Assembly (NCBI RefSeq): GCF_000006765.1
Contig: NC_002516.2
Direction: 5' to 3' (one strand)
Origin: Pseudomonas aeruginosa PAO1
Lineage (GTDB): Bacteria > Pseudomonadota > Gammaproteobacteria > Pseudomonadales > Pseudomonadaceae
Length of the DNA stretch: 64,000 nucleotides
In this document: positions 7,890 to 14,627 of the stretch, in pieces
How positions within the stretch are numbered: the stretch's first letter is position 1
Layout: every line of letters begins with the position of its first letter
Made by a program: the position numbers and the translations under genes
Notes under the pieces: model-generated
What the model saw: the letters and a program-made list of their open reading frames with translations, nothing else
Database searches by the model: none
What the model was told of the DNA's origin: nothing

Positions 7890-8130
7890 GCCGCGCGACC
7901 CGTCGCCGATCCCGACTCGGGTGCGCCGCGAGGCTTCGACAGGCGGCGGAGCGGTACGGACGAAACCATTGGCCGCCCGACAGTGACCGAACATATGGCG
8001 AACGATATCCACCGCGCCGATGGAACCACATTGGCGAACCCGGGGCCCCGCCGGCGCGTCCAACGACGGCAGACGCGTCCTGGCCGGCGTGCTAAGGTGG
8101 CCCGTCCCGAGGACCCTGCTGAGGAGAGCA

Positions 8131-9477
8131 ATGCGTAACCCCGAACGATCCGCCCTGCTGAAGGTGAGCGGGCTGCTGGGCAGCACCGTCGTCGCCATGG
8201 GGCTTGGCCTCTCCAGCGCCTGCGCGCAGAAGAATCCGACAGTCGAATACAACCAGCCTGCCGCTCCCCTGCAGACCAAGGCGCCCTTCTCCGGCGCCGG
8301 CCCGGCCGCCTCGGTGCCCGCTGGCGCGCCGAACGAGGCCCAGCCTGGGCAAAGCTTCGAACAGTGGCGCGACGCCTTCCGTCAACAGGCGCTGGCCGGT
8401 GGAATCGATGCGCAGACCTTCGATCGCGCCTTCGCCGGCGTCCAGCCCGATCCCGCCGTGGTCGAAGCAGACCGCAGCCAGCCGGAATTCACCCGACCGG
8501 TATGGAAGTACCTGGAAGGCGCCCTCGATCCGCTGCGCGTTCGCCAGGGCCAGGCGCGCCTGGCGCAGCATGCGCGCATCCTCGGCGAAGTCGACGCGCG
8601 CTATGCGGTGGATGCGGATGCGGTGGTGGCGATCTGGGGCATGGAGAGCAACTACGGTTCGCACATGGGCAACAAGAACGTGATCCGCTCCCTGGCGACC
8701 CTCGCCTATGAAGGACGCCGCCCGGAATTCGCCCACGCCCAGTTGCTCGCCGCCCTGAAGATTCTCCAGCACGGCGACGTTCCGGCCTCCTTCATGATCG
8801 GCTCCTGGGCCGGCGCCATGGGCCAGACCCAGTTCATCCCGACCACCCACAACCAGTATGCCGTGGACTTCGACGGCGACGGCAAGCGTGACATCTGGGG
8901 CTCGCCCGGCGACGCCCTGGCCTCCACCGCCAACTACCTGAAAGCCTCCGGCTGGATCGCCGGACAACCCTGGGGTTTCGAAGTCCGCCTGCCGGCAGGC
9001 TTCGACTATTCCCTGGCGGAACTCACCATCCGCAAGCCCCTGGGCGAATGGCAAGGGATGGGCGTACAAGGCGTCAACGGCGGCCCCCTGCCCTCCGGAC
9101 TCTCCGGCGAACAGGCCTCGCTGCTGCTGCCGGCCGGGCACCGCGGCCCGGCCTTCCTGGTGCTGCACAACTTCCGCGCCATCCTCAAGTACAACAACTC
9201 CAGCGCCTACGCCCTGGCCGTCGGCCTGCTCGCCGACAGCTTCAAGGGCGGCGGCCGGATAGTCGGCGCCTGGCCGCTGGAGGATGTTCCGCTGAGCCGC
9301 TCGCAGCGCATCGAGCTGCAACGGCAACTGGCCGCCCGCGGACACGATCCGGGCGCGGTGGATGGCATCATCGGCGCCAATACGCGCAAGGCGATCCGCG
9401 CCTGCCAGCAGGAGTTCGGCTGGCCGGCGGACGGCTATCCGACCCCGGCGCTGCTCGACCGCCTGCGGACGCCATAG
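8131..9477 (+). CDS. sltB3: Lytic murein transglycosylase, MltB/SltB family, with C-terminal PG-binding domain (SltB3)
   Basis: AIWGMESNYG catalytic Glu, GSWAGAMGQTQF, EF-hand DFDGDGKRD and C-terminal DGIIGANT. Confidence 0.88.
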   Translation: MRNPERSALLKVSGLLGSTVVAMGLGLSSACAQKNPTVEYNQPAAPLQTKAPFSGAGPAASVPAGAPNEAQPGQSFEQWRDAFRQQALAGGIDAQTFDRAFAGVQPDPAVVEADRSQPEFTRPVWKYLEGALDPLRVRQGQARLAQHARILGEVDARYAVDADAVVAIWGMESNYGSHMGNKNVIRSLATLAYEGRRPEFAHAQLLAALKILQHGDVPASFMIGSWAGAMGQTQFIPTTHNQYAVDFDGDGKRDIWGSPGDALASTANYLKASGWIAGQPWGFEVRLPAGFDYSLAELTIRKPLGEWQGMGVQGVNGGPLPSGLSGEQASLLLPAGHRGPAFLVLHNFRAILKYNNSSAYALAVGLLADSFKGGGRIVGAWPLEDVPLSRSQRIELQRQLAARGHDPGAVDGIIGANTRKAIRACQQEFGWPADGYPTPALLDRLRTP

Positions 9478-9536
9478 GGCCGCCGGCGGAGCTTACGACC
9501 CCACGTCCGCCGCGACCGCTCGCGGCACACCGGTTC

Positions 9537-9543
9537 GTAGGGC
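9537..9543 (+). repeat. Left part (GTAGGGC) of the REP interrupted by the IS
   Basis: Joins to 10916-10941 to give GTAGGGCGGATAACGCCATGGGCGTTATCCGCC. Confidence 0.8.
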
Positions 9544-9549
9544 AATGAA

Positions 9550-9562
9550 ATGGACTCCTCCC
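9550..9562 (+). repeat. Left sub-terminal inverted repeat of the IS
   Basis: ATGGACTCCTCCC is the exact reverse complement of 10899-10911. Confidence 0.95.
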
Positions 9563-9622
9563 TCCTACGGCGTCAAGCGCCAGACTAATGGTGCAGCCAC
9601 AAGTCCCGGAGGGGGAGTCAGC

Positions 9623-10639
9623 ATGAACCTTAGTCGCATTGGTCTGGATCTGGCAAAACAAGTATTCCAGGTGCACGGCGTTGATCGTCACGAGCATGTG
9701 GTATGTCGTCGCCAACTCAAGCGGGCACAGGTGCGGGATTTCTTTCGCCAACTGCCGCCGTGCCTGGTGGCGATGGAGGCCTGCGGCAGTGCGCACTACT
9801 GGGCGCGCGAGTTGCGGGAGCTGGGCCACACGGTACGCCTGATCGCACCGCAGTTCGTAAAACCCTACGTCAAGGGTGACAAGCACGATGCACACGACGC
9901 CGAGGCGATCTGCGAAGCCGCCAGTCGTCCGAGCATGCGCTATGTCCCGGTGAAGAGCGCAGAGCAGCAGGCCGTGCAGTCGATGCATCGGGTGCGCAGT
10001 CGTCTAGTGCGGGCCCGCACGGCGTTGTGCAATGAGGTGCGTGGCTTGCTGGGTGAGTTCGGGCTGATCGCGACTCGACGTGGGCGAGCGGCGACGATGG
10101 CCTTGCTCGAAACGGTCATGGCTACCGAGCCGGCGCCCTTGCCGGCCCCGATGGGCGAGCTGTTGCGTGAATTGAAAGATGAATTGCAGACGCTGGAGGC
10201 GCGCATCGCTCGACTGGAGCGACAGATTCAGGCTCACGTACGTGGCGATGCCCGCATCCAGCGCCTGCTGGCGGTGGAAGGCATCGGCCCGATCAGCGCC
10301 AGCGCGGTGGCGGCATCCGCCGGTGATGCACGGCAATTCCGCACGGGCCGCCAGTTTGCGGCCTGGCTGGGCCTGGTGCCACGGCAGCACTCCACGGGCG
10401 GGCAGCAGCGCTTGGGCAACATCAGCAAGCGCGGCGATACCTACTTGCGGACCTTGCTCATCCATGGCGCCCGTGCAGTCGTGCGCTGTTGCGCCAACAA
10501 GACCGATGCCCGCAGCCGCTGGCTGCAAGGTCTGCTGCAACGGCGTCCTGCCAATGTCGTCGCCGTTGCCCTGGCCAACAAGAATGCCCGGATCCTTTGG
10601 GCTTTACTCAGCCGGGAGACATGCTACCGGCCCGGTTGA
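9623..10639 (+). CDS. IS110-family DEDD transposase/recombinase (338 aa)
   Basis: RuvC-like IGLDLAK (D), AMEACG (E), KHDAHDA (DD), plus C-terminal GLVPRQHSTGG carrying the conserved Ser; RBS GGAGGGGGAG upstream. Confidence 0.96.
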   Translation: MNLSRIGLDLAKQVFQVHGVDRHEHVVCRRQLKRAQVRDFFRQLPPCLVAMEACGSAHYWARELRELGHTVRLIAPQFVKPYVKGDKHDAHDAEAICEAASRPSMRYVPVKSAEQQAVQSMHRVRSRLVRARTALCNEVRGLLGEFGLIATRRGRAATMALLETVMATEPAPLPAPMGELLRELKDELQTLEARIARLERQIQAHVRGDARIQRLLAVEGIGPISASAVAASAGDARQFRTGRQFAAWLGLVPRQHSTGGQQRLGNISKRGDTYLRTLLIHGARAVVRCCANKTDARSRWLQGLLQRRPANVVAVALANKNARILWALLSRETCYRPG

Positions 10640-10717
10640 GCGTTCCTGCCACACCGTAGTTGAAACATCCACCACGATTGCTCAGTGAATGACAATGATG
10701 ACGAACCGGTCGAACCG

Positions 10718-10856
10718 GCCTGCATGAAACCTGGTTTATACGTGGGCTCCCTGCTGCAGTGAAGCAAAGCCGTTAGGGCGATCAGGTATGCAGGCGCGCA
10801 TTTCATCAGGGCTCGGGAGTTGCAACACCACTCCATGAAGCCGGATATACGGATGC
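10718..10856 (+). ncRNA. Predicted bridge/seek guide RNA core of the IS (target-binding and donor-binding hairpins); true ends unknown
   Basis: Two tandem stem / internal-loop / GGCT:AGCC-stem structures whose loops match the target REP and the IS circle junction. Confidence 0.75.
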
Positions 10857-10898
10857 AGTCGTACACAGGTTTGAAATCAAGACAAACACTGGCAAACC

Positions 10899-10911
10899 GG
10901 GAGGAGTCCAT
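10899..10911 (-). repeat. Right sub-terminal inverted repeat of the IS
   Basis: GGGAGGAGTCCAT is the exact reverse complement of 9550-9562. Confidence 0.95.
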
Positions 10912-10915
10912 ATAC

Positions 10916-10941
10916 GGATAACGCCATGGGCGTTATCCGCC
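10916..10941 (+). repeat. Right part of the interrupted REP palindrome
   Basis: GGATAACGCC-ATG-GGCGTTATCC palindrome typical of Pseudomonas GTAG-family REPs. Confidence 0.85.
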
Positions 10942-10958
10942 GCTGCGGCGTCCAGGAC

Positions 10959-11849
10959 CTAGTCATCCGCGCAGAACCGCAGGATAGCGTCCGCCACCTG
11001 GGTGGCCGCCTCGCGCTGCGGAAAATGGCCGACGCCCTCCAGCACCAGCCGCTGGTAACGCCCGCTGAAGTAGTGCTCGCGTCCGCGGGAGCCGTCGGGG
11101 TGGGTGCAGGCATCCGCGCCGCCGTGCAGCACCAGGGTCGGCAGCGCCAGGCGCGGTGCCGGGAGCAAGCGCTGTTCCGCCGCCCCGTAGCGCGGCTTCC
11201 CCGCGACGAAGCCCCAGCGATGCCGGTAATAGTGCAGCACCACGGCCACCCAGTCCGGCCCGGAGAAGGCCTGGGCGGCCTCCTGGAAATCGCGCTCGGC
11301 ATACCATCCCGGCGGCGACCAGGTGTCCCACATCTGCCGGGCGAACGCCTCGCCCTCCTCGCGCAGCGCGCGCTCTCCGCGTGGCGTAGCCATGAACCAC
11401 TGGTACCAGAAGCTACGGGCCTGCGGCAGGGAAAGAACTTGCTGCGGATCGTTGCTGGCGTACCCCACCGAGAGCATCACCAGGTGCGAGGCTACGCCCT
11501 CGCGCAGTCCGCAGGCACTAGCCACCGCGCGAGCCCCCCAGTCATGGCCGACCAGCAGGGGACGTTGCAATGCCAGGCTGTCGACGAATGCCAGCAGATC
11601 GCAAGCCAGAGCCGCCAGTTGCCCGCTGCGCGGAGTAGACGCATCGCGGAAGCGGGTCGGGGCGAATCCCCGGAGGGCTGGTGCCAGCACCCGATAGCCG
11701 GCGTCCGCCAGGGACTCCGCCAGGTCTTTCCAGGTATGCGGGCTGTCCGGCCAACCGTGCAACAAGACGGCGCTGCGCGCCCCCTGCGGATTCCACTCCA
11801 GGTAGGCGATATCCAGGACATCGGTGGAAACGAAGGCATAGCGGCTCAT
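10959..11849 (-). CDS. Alpha/beta hydrolase, epoxide hydrolase-like
   Basis: HGWPD, GHDWGA (Asp nucleophile) and GHFPQRE motifs. Confidence 0.88.
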   Translation of the reverse strand: MSRYAFVSTDVLDIAYLEWNPQGARSAVLLHGWPDSPHTWKDLAESLADAGYRVLAPALRGFAPTRFRDASTPRSGQLAALACDLLAFVDSLALQRPLLVGHDWGARAVASACGLREGVASHLVMLSVGYASNDPQQVLSLPQARSFWYQWFMATPRGERALREEGEAFARQMWDTWSPPGWYAERDFQEAAQAFSGPDWVAVVLHYYRHRWGFVAGKPRYGAAEQRLLPAPRLALPTLVLHGGADACTHPDGSRGREHYFSGRYQRLVLEGVGHFPQREAATQVADAILRFCADD

Positions 11850-11901
11850 CGGACCTCTCCAAGAGAAAGAAGGGACATCCTAGGACGCTTGCCAAGCGTG
11901 A

Positions 11902-11933
11902 TTCATGAATAGTTAGCGTCTACTATTCATGAA
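11902..11933. promoter_or_regulatory. Inverted repeat operator between divergent hydrolase and LysR genes
   Basis: TTCATGAATAG-N10-CTATTCATGAA in an AT-rich intergenic stretch. Confidence 0.6.
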
Positions 11934-11942
11934 ACGAGATGA

Positions 11943-12848
11943 ATGGAAGACCTCATGGAGCTTGCCGTCCCCACCTCCCAATCCCTGGATATCGTGTTGT
12001 TGCGTACCTTTCTCGAAGTGGTCGACAGCGGCGGTTTCGCCCTCGCCGCGGACAATCTCGCGCTCACCCCCTCCGCAGTCAGCGGGCATATCAAGCGCCT
12101 GGAACAGACAGCCGGCGTCAGCCTGCTCAGCCGCACCACTCGCCGCCTGGAGCTGACCCAGGCGGGCGAGACGCTCTACGCCTATGCCCGCAACATCGTC
12201 GAGCTGGAGCGCGAGGCCCGCGCCAGGCTGCACGGCACGCCGATCCGCGACCGCCTGCGCATCGGCGCTTCGGAGGACTTCGCCAGCGCCTGGCTGCCAC
12301 GCGTCCTGCAACGCTTTCGCCGCTGGCACCCCGAAGCATCCATCGAACTCAAGGTCGGTATCACCACCGACCTGCTCCGCCAGCAGGCCCAGGGGCGCAC
12401 CGACGTGGTGTTCGGCAAGCAGTGCCGGCGGGTAGGAGACGACGGCGAACTGCTCTGGGAGGAACCGCTGGTCTGGGCCGCGGCGACCGCGATCGAGCTG
12501 CCCGCGGGCGAACCGCTGCCGCTGGCGCTGTTCCCCGAACCCTGCGTCTACCGCGAAGCGGCGATTACAGCCCTCGGCGCCGCTGCGCGTCCCTGGCGCC
12601 TGGTGTTCGAGAGCGCCAGCATGGCCGGCTGCCTGTCCGCCGCGCTGGCCGGTTTCGCCGTGACGGTGGTGGCGCGCAGCCAGATGCGCGAGGGGCTACG
12701 CGAACTGGGCCCGGAACAGGGTTTTCCGACGCTGCCGGAGGCGCGTTTCTACGCCTTCTCGCGCCAACCCAGCCTGGCGGCCGATGCACTGATCGAGGCG
12801 GTGCGGCAGCTCGGCCAGCGCAGTCGCTTCGTTACCGCACAGGGATGA
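11943..12848 (+). CDS. LysR-family transcriptional regulator
   Basis: N-terminal HTH (LRTFLEVVDSGGFALAADNLALTPSAVSGHIKRLE) and LysR substrate-binding domain. Confidence 0.95.
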   Translation: MEDLMELAVPTSQSLDIVLLRTFLEVVDSGGFALAADNLALTPSAVSGHIKRLEQTAGVSLLSRTTRRLELTQAGETLYAYARNIVELEREARARLHGTPIRDRLRIGASEDFASAWLPRVLQRFRRWHPEASIELKVGITTDLLRQQAQGRTDVVFGKQCRRVGDDGELLWEEPLVWAAATAIELPAGEPLPLALFPEPCVYREAAITALGAAARPWRLVFESASMAGCLSAALAGFAVTVVARSQMREGLRELGPEQGFPTLPEARFYAFSRQPSLAADALIEAVRQLGQRSRFVTAQG

Positions 12849-12874
12849 GAGCAAACGGTACTCACCTACGCGCC

Positions 12875-12906
12875 GGCGGATGACCGCAAGCGGTTGTTCG
12901 TCCTAC
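12875..12906 (-). repeat. Degenerate, unoccupied GTAG-type REP
   Basis: Minus strand reads GTAGGACGAACAACCGCTTGCGGTCATCCGCC. Confidence 0.7.
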
Positions 12907-12935
12907 GTCCGAAGAGGCTTCGTGGCTGCCCAATG

Positions 12936-12969
12936 AAAAACGCCGCGTCCCTGTGCAGGGACGCGGCGT
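12936..12969 (-). terminator. Intrinsic terminator of the lipB-lipA operon
   Basis: ACGCCGCGTCCCTG-tg-CAGGGACGCGGCGT stem with TTTTT following on the minus strand. Confidence 0.85.
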
Positions 12970-12993
12970 CGGAAGGCATTGGCGCGGCGTAGA

Positions 12994-13977
12994 TCAGCCG
13001 ATCTTGTTGCCGTGCGCCTGCTGGTCGGCATGGTAGGACGAACGCACCAGCGGGCCGGACGCGACGTTCTTGAAGCCCATCTTCTCGCCTTCCTCGGCGA
13101 ACCAGGCGAAGGTGTCCGGATGCACGAAGCGCTGCACCGGCAGGTGGTTGCGCGACGGCTGCAGGTACTGGCCGAGGGTCAGCATGTCGATGTCGTGCTC
13201 GCGCATCCGCTGCATGACCTCGATGACCTCGTCGTCGGTCTCGCCCAGGCCGAGCATCAGCCCGGACTTGGTCGGTACGTGCGGAACCATCTGCTTGAAC
13301 TTCTGCAGCAGGTCCAGCGACCACTCGAAGTCCGAGCCCGGCCGCGAGGAGCGGTACAGGCGCGGTACCGTCTCCAGGTTATGGTTGAACACGTCCGGCG
13401 GCTCGTTGGCGGTGATCTCCAGGGCGATGTCCATGCGACCGCGATAGTCGGGCACCAGGGTTTCCAGCTGGATCCCCGGCGACAGCTTGCGGATCTCGCG
13501 CAGGCAGTCGGCGAAGTGCTGGGCGCCGCCGTCGCGCAGGTCGTCGCGGTCCACCGAGGTGATCACCACGTACTTCAGCCGCAGGTCGGCGATGGCGATG
13601 GCCAGGTTGGTCGGCTCGTCGACGTCCAGCGGCTTCGGCCGGCCATGACCGACGTCGCAGAACGGGCAGCGTCGGGTGCAGATATCGCCCATGATCATGA
13701 AGGTCGCGGTGCCGCCGGAGAAGCACTCGCCCAGGTTCGGGCAGGACGCCTCTTCGCAGACGCTGTGCAGCTTGTGCTTGCGCAGCAGTTGCTTGATGCG
13801 GTCGACCTCGGGGGAAACCGGGATGCGCACGCGGATCCAGTCGGGTTTCTTCGGCAGTTCCTCGGTGGGAATGATCTTCACCGGAATCCGCGCGACCTTT
13901 TCCGCGCCGCGCAGCTTCACGCCGACTTCCACCTTGCCCGGCTTGGCTTCTCCGGACTTCTCCACAACAGTGCTCAT
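12994..13977 (-). CDS. lipA: Lipoyl synthase
   Basis: [12 protein letters not shown] and radical-SAM CTRRCPFC motifs. Confidence 0.98.
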
Positions 13978-14627
13978 GTCAGTTCGATCCCGCCCGTAAG
14001 GGTCTTCTGTTCAGCGTAGCCAAGGCGTGAGACGAGCTCAGCGCGCAATCGGGTACACACCTCGGCAAAATCCACCGGCCCAACCAGGTCGCGCAGTTGG
14101 GTCATGGGCATCCCGGCGTAGCCGCAGGGATTGATTCGTTGGAACGGTCGCAGGTCCATGTCCAGGTTCAGCGCCAGGCCATGGAAGGAACAGCCGTTGC
14201 GGATGCGCAGGCCGAGGGAGGCGATCTTCGCCCCGTCGACGTAGACACCCGGCGCGTCCGGCTTGGCCACGGCCTGCACGTCATAGGACGCCAGCAGGCC
14301 GATCAGGCTCTGCTCGATCCGGCTGACCAGCTCGCGCACGCCCAGTCCCAGGCGGCGGACATCGAGCAGCAGGTAGGTGACCAACTGGCCGGGGCCGTGG
14401 TAGGTCACCTGGCCGCCGCGATCTACCTGGATCACCGGGATGTCGCCGGGGAACAGCACATGCTCCGCCTTGCCGGCCTGCCCCTGGGTGAAGACCGCAG
14501 GGTGCTGCAACAGCCAGGCTTCGTCCATTACCGATTTGTCGCGCTCGGCAACGAAGCGCTGCATGGCATGCCAGGTCGGTTCGTAGGGAACCTCGCCGAG
14601 CTCACGGAAGCCCAGCTCGAGTCCCAT
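13974..14627 (-). CDS. lipB: Octanoyltransferase
   Basis: [28 protein letters not shown] and PCG motifs. Confidence 0.97.

Follow-up and report, generated by a model that had tools for sequence, protein, structure and literature searches.

The RNA that guides ISPa11 to its target is already known and was published in 2024 by Siddiquee et al. and Durrant et al. Siddiquee, Pong, Hall and Ataide (Nat Commun 2024; PMC11187229) purified a 96-nt ISPa11 seekRNA together with the transposase (their Fig. 3e,h and Supplementary Fig. 6b), and described co-purification and small RNA-seq of an RNase-sensitive RNA from the non-coding region (NCR) downstream of tnp of this same element, with the P. aeruginosa REP as the target. 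In seekRNAs of the IS1111 type, that of ISPa11 included, the complement of the target top strand lies 5′ of the complement of the bottom strand, which is also the order found in the hairpin considered below. The downstream part, present in the long seekRNA, is given no donor-binding role there. The published 96-nt RNA, whose limits are shown in figures, presumably covers positions 10718–10795 of our sequence. For the related ISEc11, the literature describes an essential seekRNA that works in trans and is open to reprogramming, and a donor that must be flanked by the target for excision. The second report (Durrant et al., Nature 2024; PMC11208160) proposes a two-loop model with the RNA located in the right end of IS1111 elements. 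ISPa11 is there among six worked examples, and its left and right target guides (LTG, RTG) and left and right donor guides (LDG, RDG) are drawn in Extended Data Fig. 10c. That ISPa11 bridge RNA is a covariance-model prediction, and its likeness to the RNA described here is seen at the level of the named guides.

IS621, a member of the IS110 group (Durrant et al., 2024; Hiraizumi et al., 2024, PMC11208158), shares with ISPa11 a single RNA with two internal loops, each holding two guides for opposite strands around a short core, as well as a DEDD/RuvC recombinase with a Tnp domain, a circular donor and REP targets. In its tetrameric synapse, target and donor are each held by one of the two loops, and a serine of the Tnp domain cuts the top strands beside the core. 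IS621 differs, however, in that its RNA lies upstream of the recombinase gene, the guide order within each loop is reversed and the subterminal inverted repeats (sTIRs) are only 2–3 bp long. Moreover, the CT core of IS621 is identical in donor and target, whereas the guides of ISPa11 read C-G and its left end reads C-A. ISPpu9 and ISPpu10 of Pseudomonas putida (PMC12288879) belong to the same superfamily, also target REPs and form circular intermediates, with a junction promoter in ISPpu10. By their description they are set apart as other elements with another REP, and in ISPpu9 the native Ptnp promoter gives rise to the bridge RNA before the tnp mRNA is made (PMC12288879).

The locus described here lies in the window, i.e., the whole 64-kb stretch of DNA that was analysed, and all its features are given on the + strand unless stated otherwise. 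Judged by its sequence, the element at 9543–10914 is ISPa11, an insertion sequence of the IS1111 group. It spans 1372 bp, including, in the published convention, a 7-bp left extension (CAATGAA) and a 3-bp right extension (ATA). The tnp gene (9623–10639) encodes a DEDD (RuvC-like) transposase/recombinase of 338 aa. Its sequence agrees letter for letter with the ISPa11 transposase listed in the supplement of PMC11187229, and Pfam domains PF01548 (DEDD_Tnp_IS110) and PF02371 are recorded for exactly this protein. Between the tnp stop codon (10639) and the right end (10914) there are 275 non-coding nucleotides, 270 of which match the published ISPa11 NCR, the hairpin being 100% identical. The left sTIR, ATGGACTCCTCCC (9550–9562), and its complement, the right sTIR GGGAGGAGTCCAT (10899–10911), form an exact 13-bp inverted repeat, and its ATGGAC core is kept in 55 homologous loci. 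The 13-bp sTIRs, the asymmetric extensions, the long non-coding region behind tnp and the lack of a target duplication, seen from empty sites with a single C, are features by which the IS1111 group is recognized; sTIRs in that group measure 11–13 bp. A 95-aa antisense ORF (10624–10911, − strand) spans the whole non-coding region and is probably spurious, as the region is constrained as a + strand RNA structure. The gene order at 8020–14627, with a lytic transglycosylase (SLT_2), the IS, a convergent alpha/beta hydrolase, a LysR regulator, lipA and lipB, matches the layout of P. aeruginosa PAO1.

ISPa11 is located in the left shoulder of a palindromic P. aeruginosa REP. The left junction reads GTAGGGC|AATGAA (9537–9549), where GTAGGG (9537–9542) is the left half of the interrupted target. 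The right junction reads CCATATA|CGGATAAC (10909–10922; in the extended reading CCATATA|CGGATAACGCCatgGGCGTTATCCGCC), followed by the right half of the REP with its palindrome, CGGATAACGCC-atg-GGCGTTATCCGCC (10915–10941). What remains of the REP palindrome (10916–10938) is found 21 nt past the end of the hydrolase gene. A 6.26-Mb PAO1-like genome holds six ISPa11 copies (L081–L086) with identical ends and an identical hairpin, one of which (L085) has the same neighbours as the window element, namely the SLT_2 protein upstream and the alpha/beta hydrolase downstream. All six have the left flank GTAGGGC and a right flank CG[A/C/G]ATAAC followed by the palindrome: CGAATAAC in four copies, CGCATAAC in one and the window's own CGGATAAC in one. 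The insertion is therefore site- and orientation-specific in P. aeruginosa REPs (6/6 copies). Empty sites were drawn from a metagenome scan, which gave 48 distinct uninterrupted REPs (range L091–L206). In these sites GTAGGG and CG[N]ATAAC are contiguous, with the reading GTAGGGCG[A/G/C]ATAAC, then the palindrome, and a single C. The polymorphic base is A in 38 of the empty sites, G in 8, C in 2 and T in none, and at the six insertions it is A four times, C once and G once. A search of the 64-kb window for other REPs of the same type (TAGGGCGGATAA, up to 2 mismatches) returned one chance-level match and no empty site. Because the C is shared by both sides, the insertion point is ambiguous, and the published convention puts it at TAGGG|CG.

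The hairpin is found 79 nt past the tnp stop codon, ahead of the right 13-bp inverted repeat. It was first noticed in a sequence-only reading of the window, which proposed a target-binding hairpin whose internal loop spells both sides of the REP insertion site. The letters and positions given there are correct. The stem strands are GCCTGCATGAAACCTG (10718–10733) and CAGGTATGCAGGC (10783–10795), the inner stem is GGCT (10745–10748) with AGCC (10768–10771), and the two loop strands contain TTATACG (10736–10742) and TAGGGCG (10774–10780). RNAfold of 10718–10795 returns the proposed arrangement: an 8-bp outer stem (10718–10725 with 10788–10795), an AAA bulge, a CCUG:CAGG stem, a large internal loop, the GGCU:AGCC inner stem and a small apical hairpin. 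Three weak pairs that the program adds (10734–10736 with 10780–10782) are not kept by homologues, hence the stem limits of the sequence-only reading are the better ones. The minimum free energy is −32.7 kcal/mol (z = −2.6; 2 of 200 shuffles fold equally well), which taken alone is modest. A scan of 9400–11100 with Rfam 15 (E ≤ 1) found no family, meaning that Rfam 15 holds no matching model for the hairpin RNA. A stable G+C-rich hairpin shortly after a stop codon could also be an intrinsic terminator or an mRNA-stabilising 3′ hairpin of tnp, with the REP matches incidental. The sequence that follows it (GCGCGCAUUUCAUC) contains no U-tract, however, and a terminator scan of 9400–11000 came back empty. 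An internal loop of 11+10 nt that tracks about 24 target classes, as described below, would moreover be needless for a terminator, and such a role is extremely improbable.

The two loop strands correspond to the two halves of the target. The 3′ strand, UAGGGCG (10774–10780), is identical to the top strand TAGGG-C-G and hence would pair with the bottom strand; as claimed, it matches the empty REP site at 7/7 positions and is taken as the LTG. The 5′ strand, UUAUACG (10736–10742), would pair with the top strand C-G-N-A-T-A-A as the RTG, and its reverse complement matches the empty REP at 6/7 positions, A10740 being opposite the polymorphic REP base. The sequence-only reading also stated, with CGAATAA as the example, that the mismatched position varies among REPs, and this is what the six copies display: the right flank is CGAATAA in four, CGCATAA in one and CGGATAA in one, the last being the window copy. 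One could argue that the 7-mers are a captured REP fragment or resemble the REP by chance, without any guiding role. Among 20,000 shuffled 78-mers, 1.7% reach a 7/7 sense and at least a 6/7 antisense match to the 14-nt target with positions unconstrained, a fraction that is not negligible genome-wide, so the evidence from the single sequence is moderate. The matches in the window are nevertheless one sense and one antisense, placed on opposite strands of a conserved loop and overlapping at the crossover. The comparative data described next place them far beyond chance.

A homologue scan with one genome per species gave 80 loci, with relatives at 48–80% transposase identity. The sTIRs (ATGGAC-type), and hence both junctions, could be placed in 55 of them, and the covariation test covered about 50 homologues with about 24 different insertion sites. 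The junctions follow one rule: LT-X-[A/G]ATGnnn-ATGGAC on the left and GTCCAT-ATA-X-RT on the right, where X is the same on both sides and usually C or T. In L017, L025 and L047 X differs between the junctions (C left and T right, or T left and G right), which would be the expected trace of a staggered exchange between unequal cores, or of later mutation. The 49 distinct NCRs align well and the hairpin is present in every one of them; likewise, 45 distinct hairpins folded singly adopt the same architecture. A covariance model (R1) built from 25 homologues, with the window left out, has its sole match in the 64-kb window at exactly 10718–10795 (32.2 bits, E = 8e-7), and it gives 69 matches in the 80 fetched loci plus the window. 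Extra matches of the hairpin model away from the main copy were seen in L055 (1470–1534, − strand) and L069 (1171–1233); they may represent a neighbouring second IS or a solo RNA module.

The check by folding and covariation that the sequence-only reading had proposed was carried out on these alignments. When all hairpins were aligned with plain MAFFT (A1), the 5′ loops of forms with a long apex were out of register with those of short-apex forms; a short-apex subset (A2) and then a model-based alignment (A3) took its place. RNAalifold on A2 recovered the outer stems only, and the inner stem was then supplied by hand and tested by counting. In the model-based alignment 88.4% of cells are paired, as compared with 62.8% in shuffled data, both stems covary with compensatory changes in 13 of 15 pairs, and the covariation score is 0.637 vs 0.165 for shuffled alignments and at most 0.142 with slid partners; the plain MAFFT subset agrees. 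U-G and G-U pairs are frequent on the + strand, with 10–11 U-G cells in pairs 8–80 and 30–62, which indicates an RNA read from that strand. The same covariation, considered alone, is compatible with a DNA hairpin, so that the sequence might act in transposition as DNA, i.e., as a cruciform, a single-stranded hairpin or a protein-binding site. In elements of the IS200/IS605 type, the target is indeed chosen by means of DNA hairpins and DNA-DNA pairing. Against a role as DNA, the other strand would have C-A mismatches where the + strand has G-U and U-G pairs, and such pairs are weaker in DNA. Moreover, the RNA that co-purifies with the transposase is RNase-sensitive and maps to the ISPa11 NCR, and for ISEc11 it was published that RNA supplied in trans from a plasmid rescues a mini-IS lacking the region. 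We therefore regard the DNA explanation as very unlikely.

The central claim, that the loop strands are the left and right target guides, was examined by comparing loops with flanks across the homologues. Only bases that necessarily come from the target were scored. Subfamilies differ by ±1 in loop register, so that fixed columns under-count the matches, and a register shift of ±1–2 was therefore allowed equally for the observed and the permuted sets. For 37 distinct guide pairs the match of the reverse complement of the 5′ strand to the right flank was 6.32/8 vs 3.56 in permutations (sd 0.19, z = 14.5), and that of the 3′ strand to the left flank was 4.70/5 vs 2.34 (sd 0.17, z = 14.3). Neither observed value was reached in any of 5000 permutations, and z remains at 11–12 when each of the 24 target classes is represented once. 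Across homologues the 3′ loop strands read TAGGGCG, TAGCCCG, TAATCCG, AAAGCA, AGACCTG, GGTACTG, GGTTCTG, GCGCGAG or TTTGTTG, in each case the left flank extended by the base that opens the right flank, and in L017, L035, L038 and L066 the 5′ strand agrees with the reverse complement of the right flank at 8/8 positions. Homologues that have different targets and keep the same loop were looked for, and the opposite was observed. Chance resemblance or a captured fragment would hardly make the same columns fit the unrelated targets of homologues (TAGCCCG, TAATCCG, AGACCTG, GGTACTG/GGTTCTG, GCGCGAG), and we give that explanation almost no weight. The loop strands thus bear out their designation as left and right target guides, with covariation at z of about 14 on both strands, and they explain the REP specificity, as the sequence-only reading had suggested: they match the two REP halves in the window and covary with the flanks across homologues.

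The clearest single cases come from close relatives. The Massilia elements L035 and L036, with 91% transposase identity, have the loops GGTACTG/AAGTTGACA and GGTTCTG/AATGCGATA, and their flanks, TTGGTACT|GTCAACTT vs CGGGTTCT|GTCGCATT, differ as the loop bases do. In this pair, as also in L060/L061, the transposases are 91–93% identical and the scaffolds nearly so, while guides and insertion sites differ; read from their sequences, both are natural retargeting pairs. In L011 and L037 (Sphingomonadales) the LTG matches the left flank at 7/7 positions and the RTG matches the right flank at only 3/8. The IS lies there on the far side of a REP-like palindrome, and these cases may be off-target or one-sided insertions.

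Directly downstream, at 10796–10860 (approximate limits), there is a second hairpin with a GGCU:AGCC inner stem (10810–10813 with 10839–10842) and an apical hairpin. Its fold and the covariation of its loop with the IS ends identify it as the donor-binding loop, so that 10718–10860 is a two-loop bridge RNA with a guide order reversed relative to IS621. The 5′ loop strand, the RDG CAUUUCAU (DNA CATTTCAT; 10799–10806), is the reverse complement of the left end ATGAAATG (9545–9552). The 3′ loop strand, the LDG AUAUACG (10845–10851), equals the right end ATATA plus C (10910–10915), followed by G. In homologues, values that are not independent of shared descent are 6.03/8 vs 5.08 for the variable triplet of the RDG against the left end (z about 7.7) and 5.91/6 vs 5.05 for the LDG against right ends (z about 8.7). 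The LDG copies unusual right ends such as ATACTA, ACACAT, ATAGAT, ATACAT and ATATAA, and the left-end triplets complemented in the RDG strand include GGG, GAC, GAA, GGT and others. A different explanation is that the seekRNA serves the target only, the IS ends being read by the protein via the sTIRs and the second hairpin being no donor guide. It draws on the sufficiency of the short seekRNA for ISEc11 movement, with end recognition left open (Siddiquee et al., PMC11187229), by which the second loop may not be strictly needed, and on the long 13-bp sTIRs that are specific to IS1111. It is at odds with the second hairpin itself, where the loop strands change along with rare variants of either IS end, and with the LDG and RDG assigned to ISPa11 by Durrant et al. 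(PMC11208160). We consider it unlikely, and it would leave the reading of 10718–10795 unchanged, as it concerns the neighbouring hairpin only.

Two further readings were considered and dropped. A 10-nt match of AUAUACGGAU (10845–10854) to the right junction was rejected as a real guide extension, being absent from the other five copies; beyond the core it is a coincidence, since it needs a G at +2 that occurs only in the window copy. Guides of the IS621 handshake type, in which the two bases 3′ of the core-pairing part of the RTG would pair with the final two bases of the right end, were also looked for: UG could pair with TA with one wobble, and no consistent pattern was found in homologues, for which reason this reading was abandoned. 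The RNA as a whole is flanked by near-invariant motifs, AAC[CA]GGTCGAACCGG 5′ of the first hairpin (10703–10718) and GCAGTCGTAC 3′ of the second (10855–10864). The former, GAACCGGTCGAACCGG in the window, stands directly 5′ of the hairpin and is near-invariant in the alignment of 49 NCRs. Both motifs are candidates for processing or protein-binding sites.

Taken together, we put at roughly 95% the probability that 10718–10795 encodes the target-binding loop of the ISPa11 bridge RNA (seekRNA), located in the 3′ NCR and bound by the DEDD recombinase. The fold, the conservation, the covariation of stems, the covariation of loops with flanks and ends and the identity of ISPa11 were computed here. 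In the mechanism that we propose, the conserved scaffold (outer stem, CCUG:CAGG and GGCU:AGCC) would present two single-stranded guides across the internal loop. The 3′ strand UAGGGCG would pair with the bottom strand of the left REP half (TAGGG-CG) and the 5′ strand UUAUACG with the top strand of the right half (CG-N-ATAA), so that the two target guides would overlap on CG at the crossover. The hairpin at 10796–10860 would in turn present CAUUUCAU for the left end and AUAUACG for the right end of the joined IS, and one RNA would thereby bring the circular IS and the REP together, with recombination at the shared C. By analogy with IS621, strand exchange in ISPa11 would follow the same chemistry, with its crossover at this C.

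As to the expression of the RNA, a scan of the integrated copy (9400–11000) for sigma-70 promoters and terminators detected none. When the ends are joined (10890–10914 with 9543–9546), TGGCAA is followed by a 17-nt spacer and TA|CAAT, the latter being TATAAT in relatives with T at the crossover. Inspected by eye, the joined ISPa11 ends likely form a junction promoter, in agreement with the published view that transcription starts from the circle junction.

In two places the guides depart from the DNA that they would pair with. The first is A10740. In all natural REP variants found, the base opposite it is A, G or C, with T absent, so that the guide never pairs there; the RTG thus has one mismatch with every natural REP variant, and the mismatch is not special to the window copy. 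The second is the base after the shared C, i.e., core position +1. It is G according to each of the four guides, the two donor guides included, and A in the left end of ISPa11 and of most family members. The homologues L038, L051, L055, L059, L064 and L069 have G at that left-end position, and their two-base cores are identical in donor and target. That the left end keeps A though all guides read G would be explained if this A is part of the −10 element of the putative junction promoter. It is possible, though less likely than not, that both departures (A10740 and the core C-G vs C-A) are built-in features of IS1111-type bridge recombination and not noise. If so, the unpaired A10740 may let one RNA accept all REP variants, and the left-end A, by completing the −10 hexamer TA[C/T]AAT 17 nt after TGGCAA, would fix the donor core base. 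A core base fixed by the promoter would then force a G-T wobble or a heteroduplex during strand exchange.

For the window itself, the result is an annotation, and beyond the 2024 papers on ISPa11 it adds only small details, i.e., those at core position +1 and target position +2. It also means that the guides of a bridge RNA can be recovered from raw sequence alone, and the public homologue set independently supports the model. With insertion sites chosen by an RNA guide, it becomes clear how a single recombinase family can have hundreds of distinct targets, each highly specific, and the same principle underlies the programmable bridge recombinases used in genome engineering.
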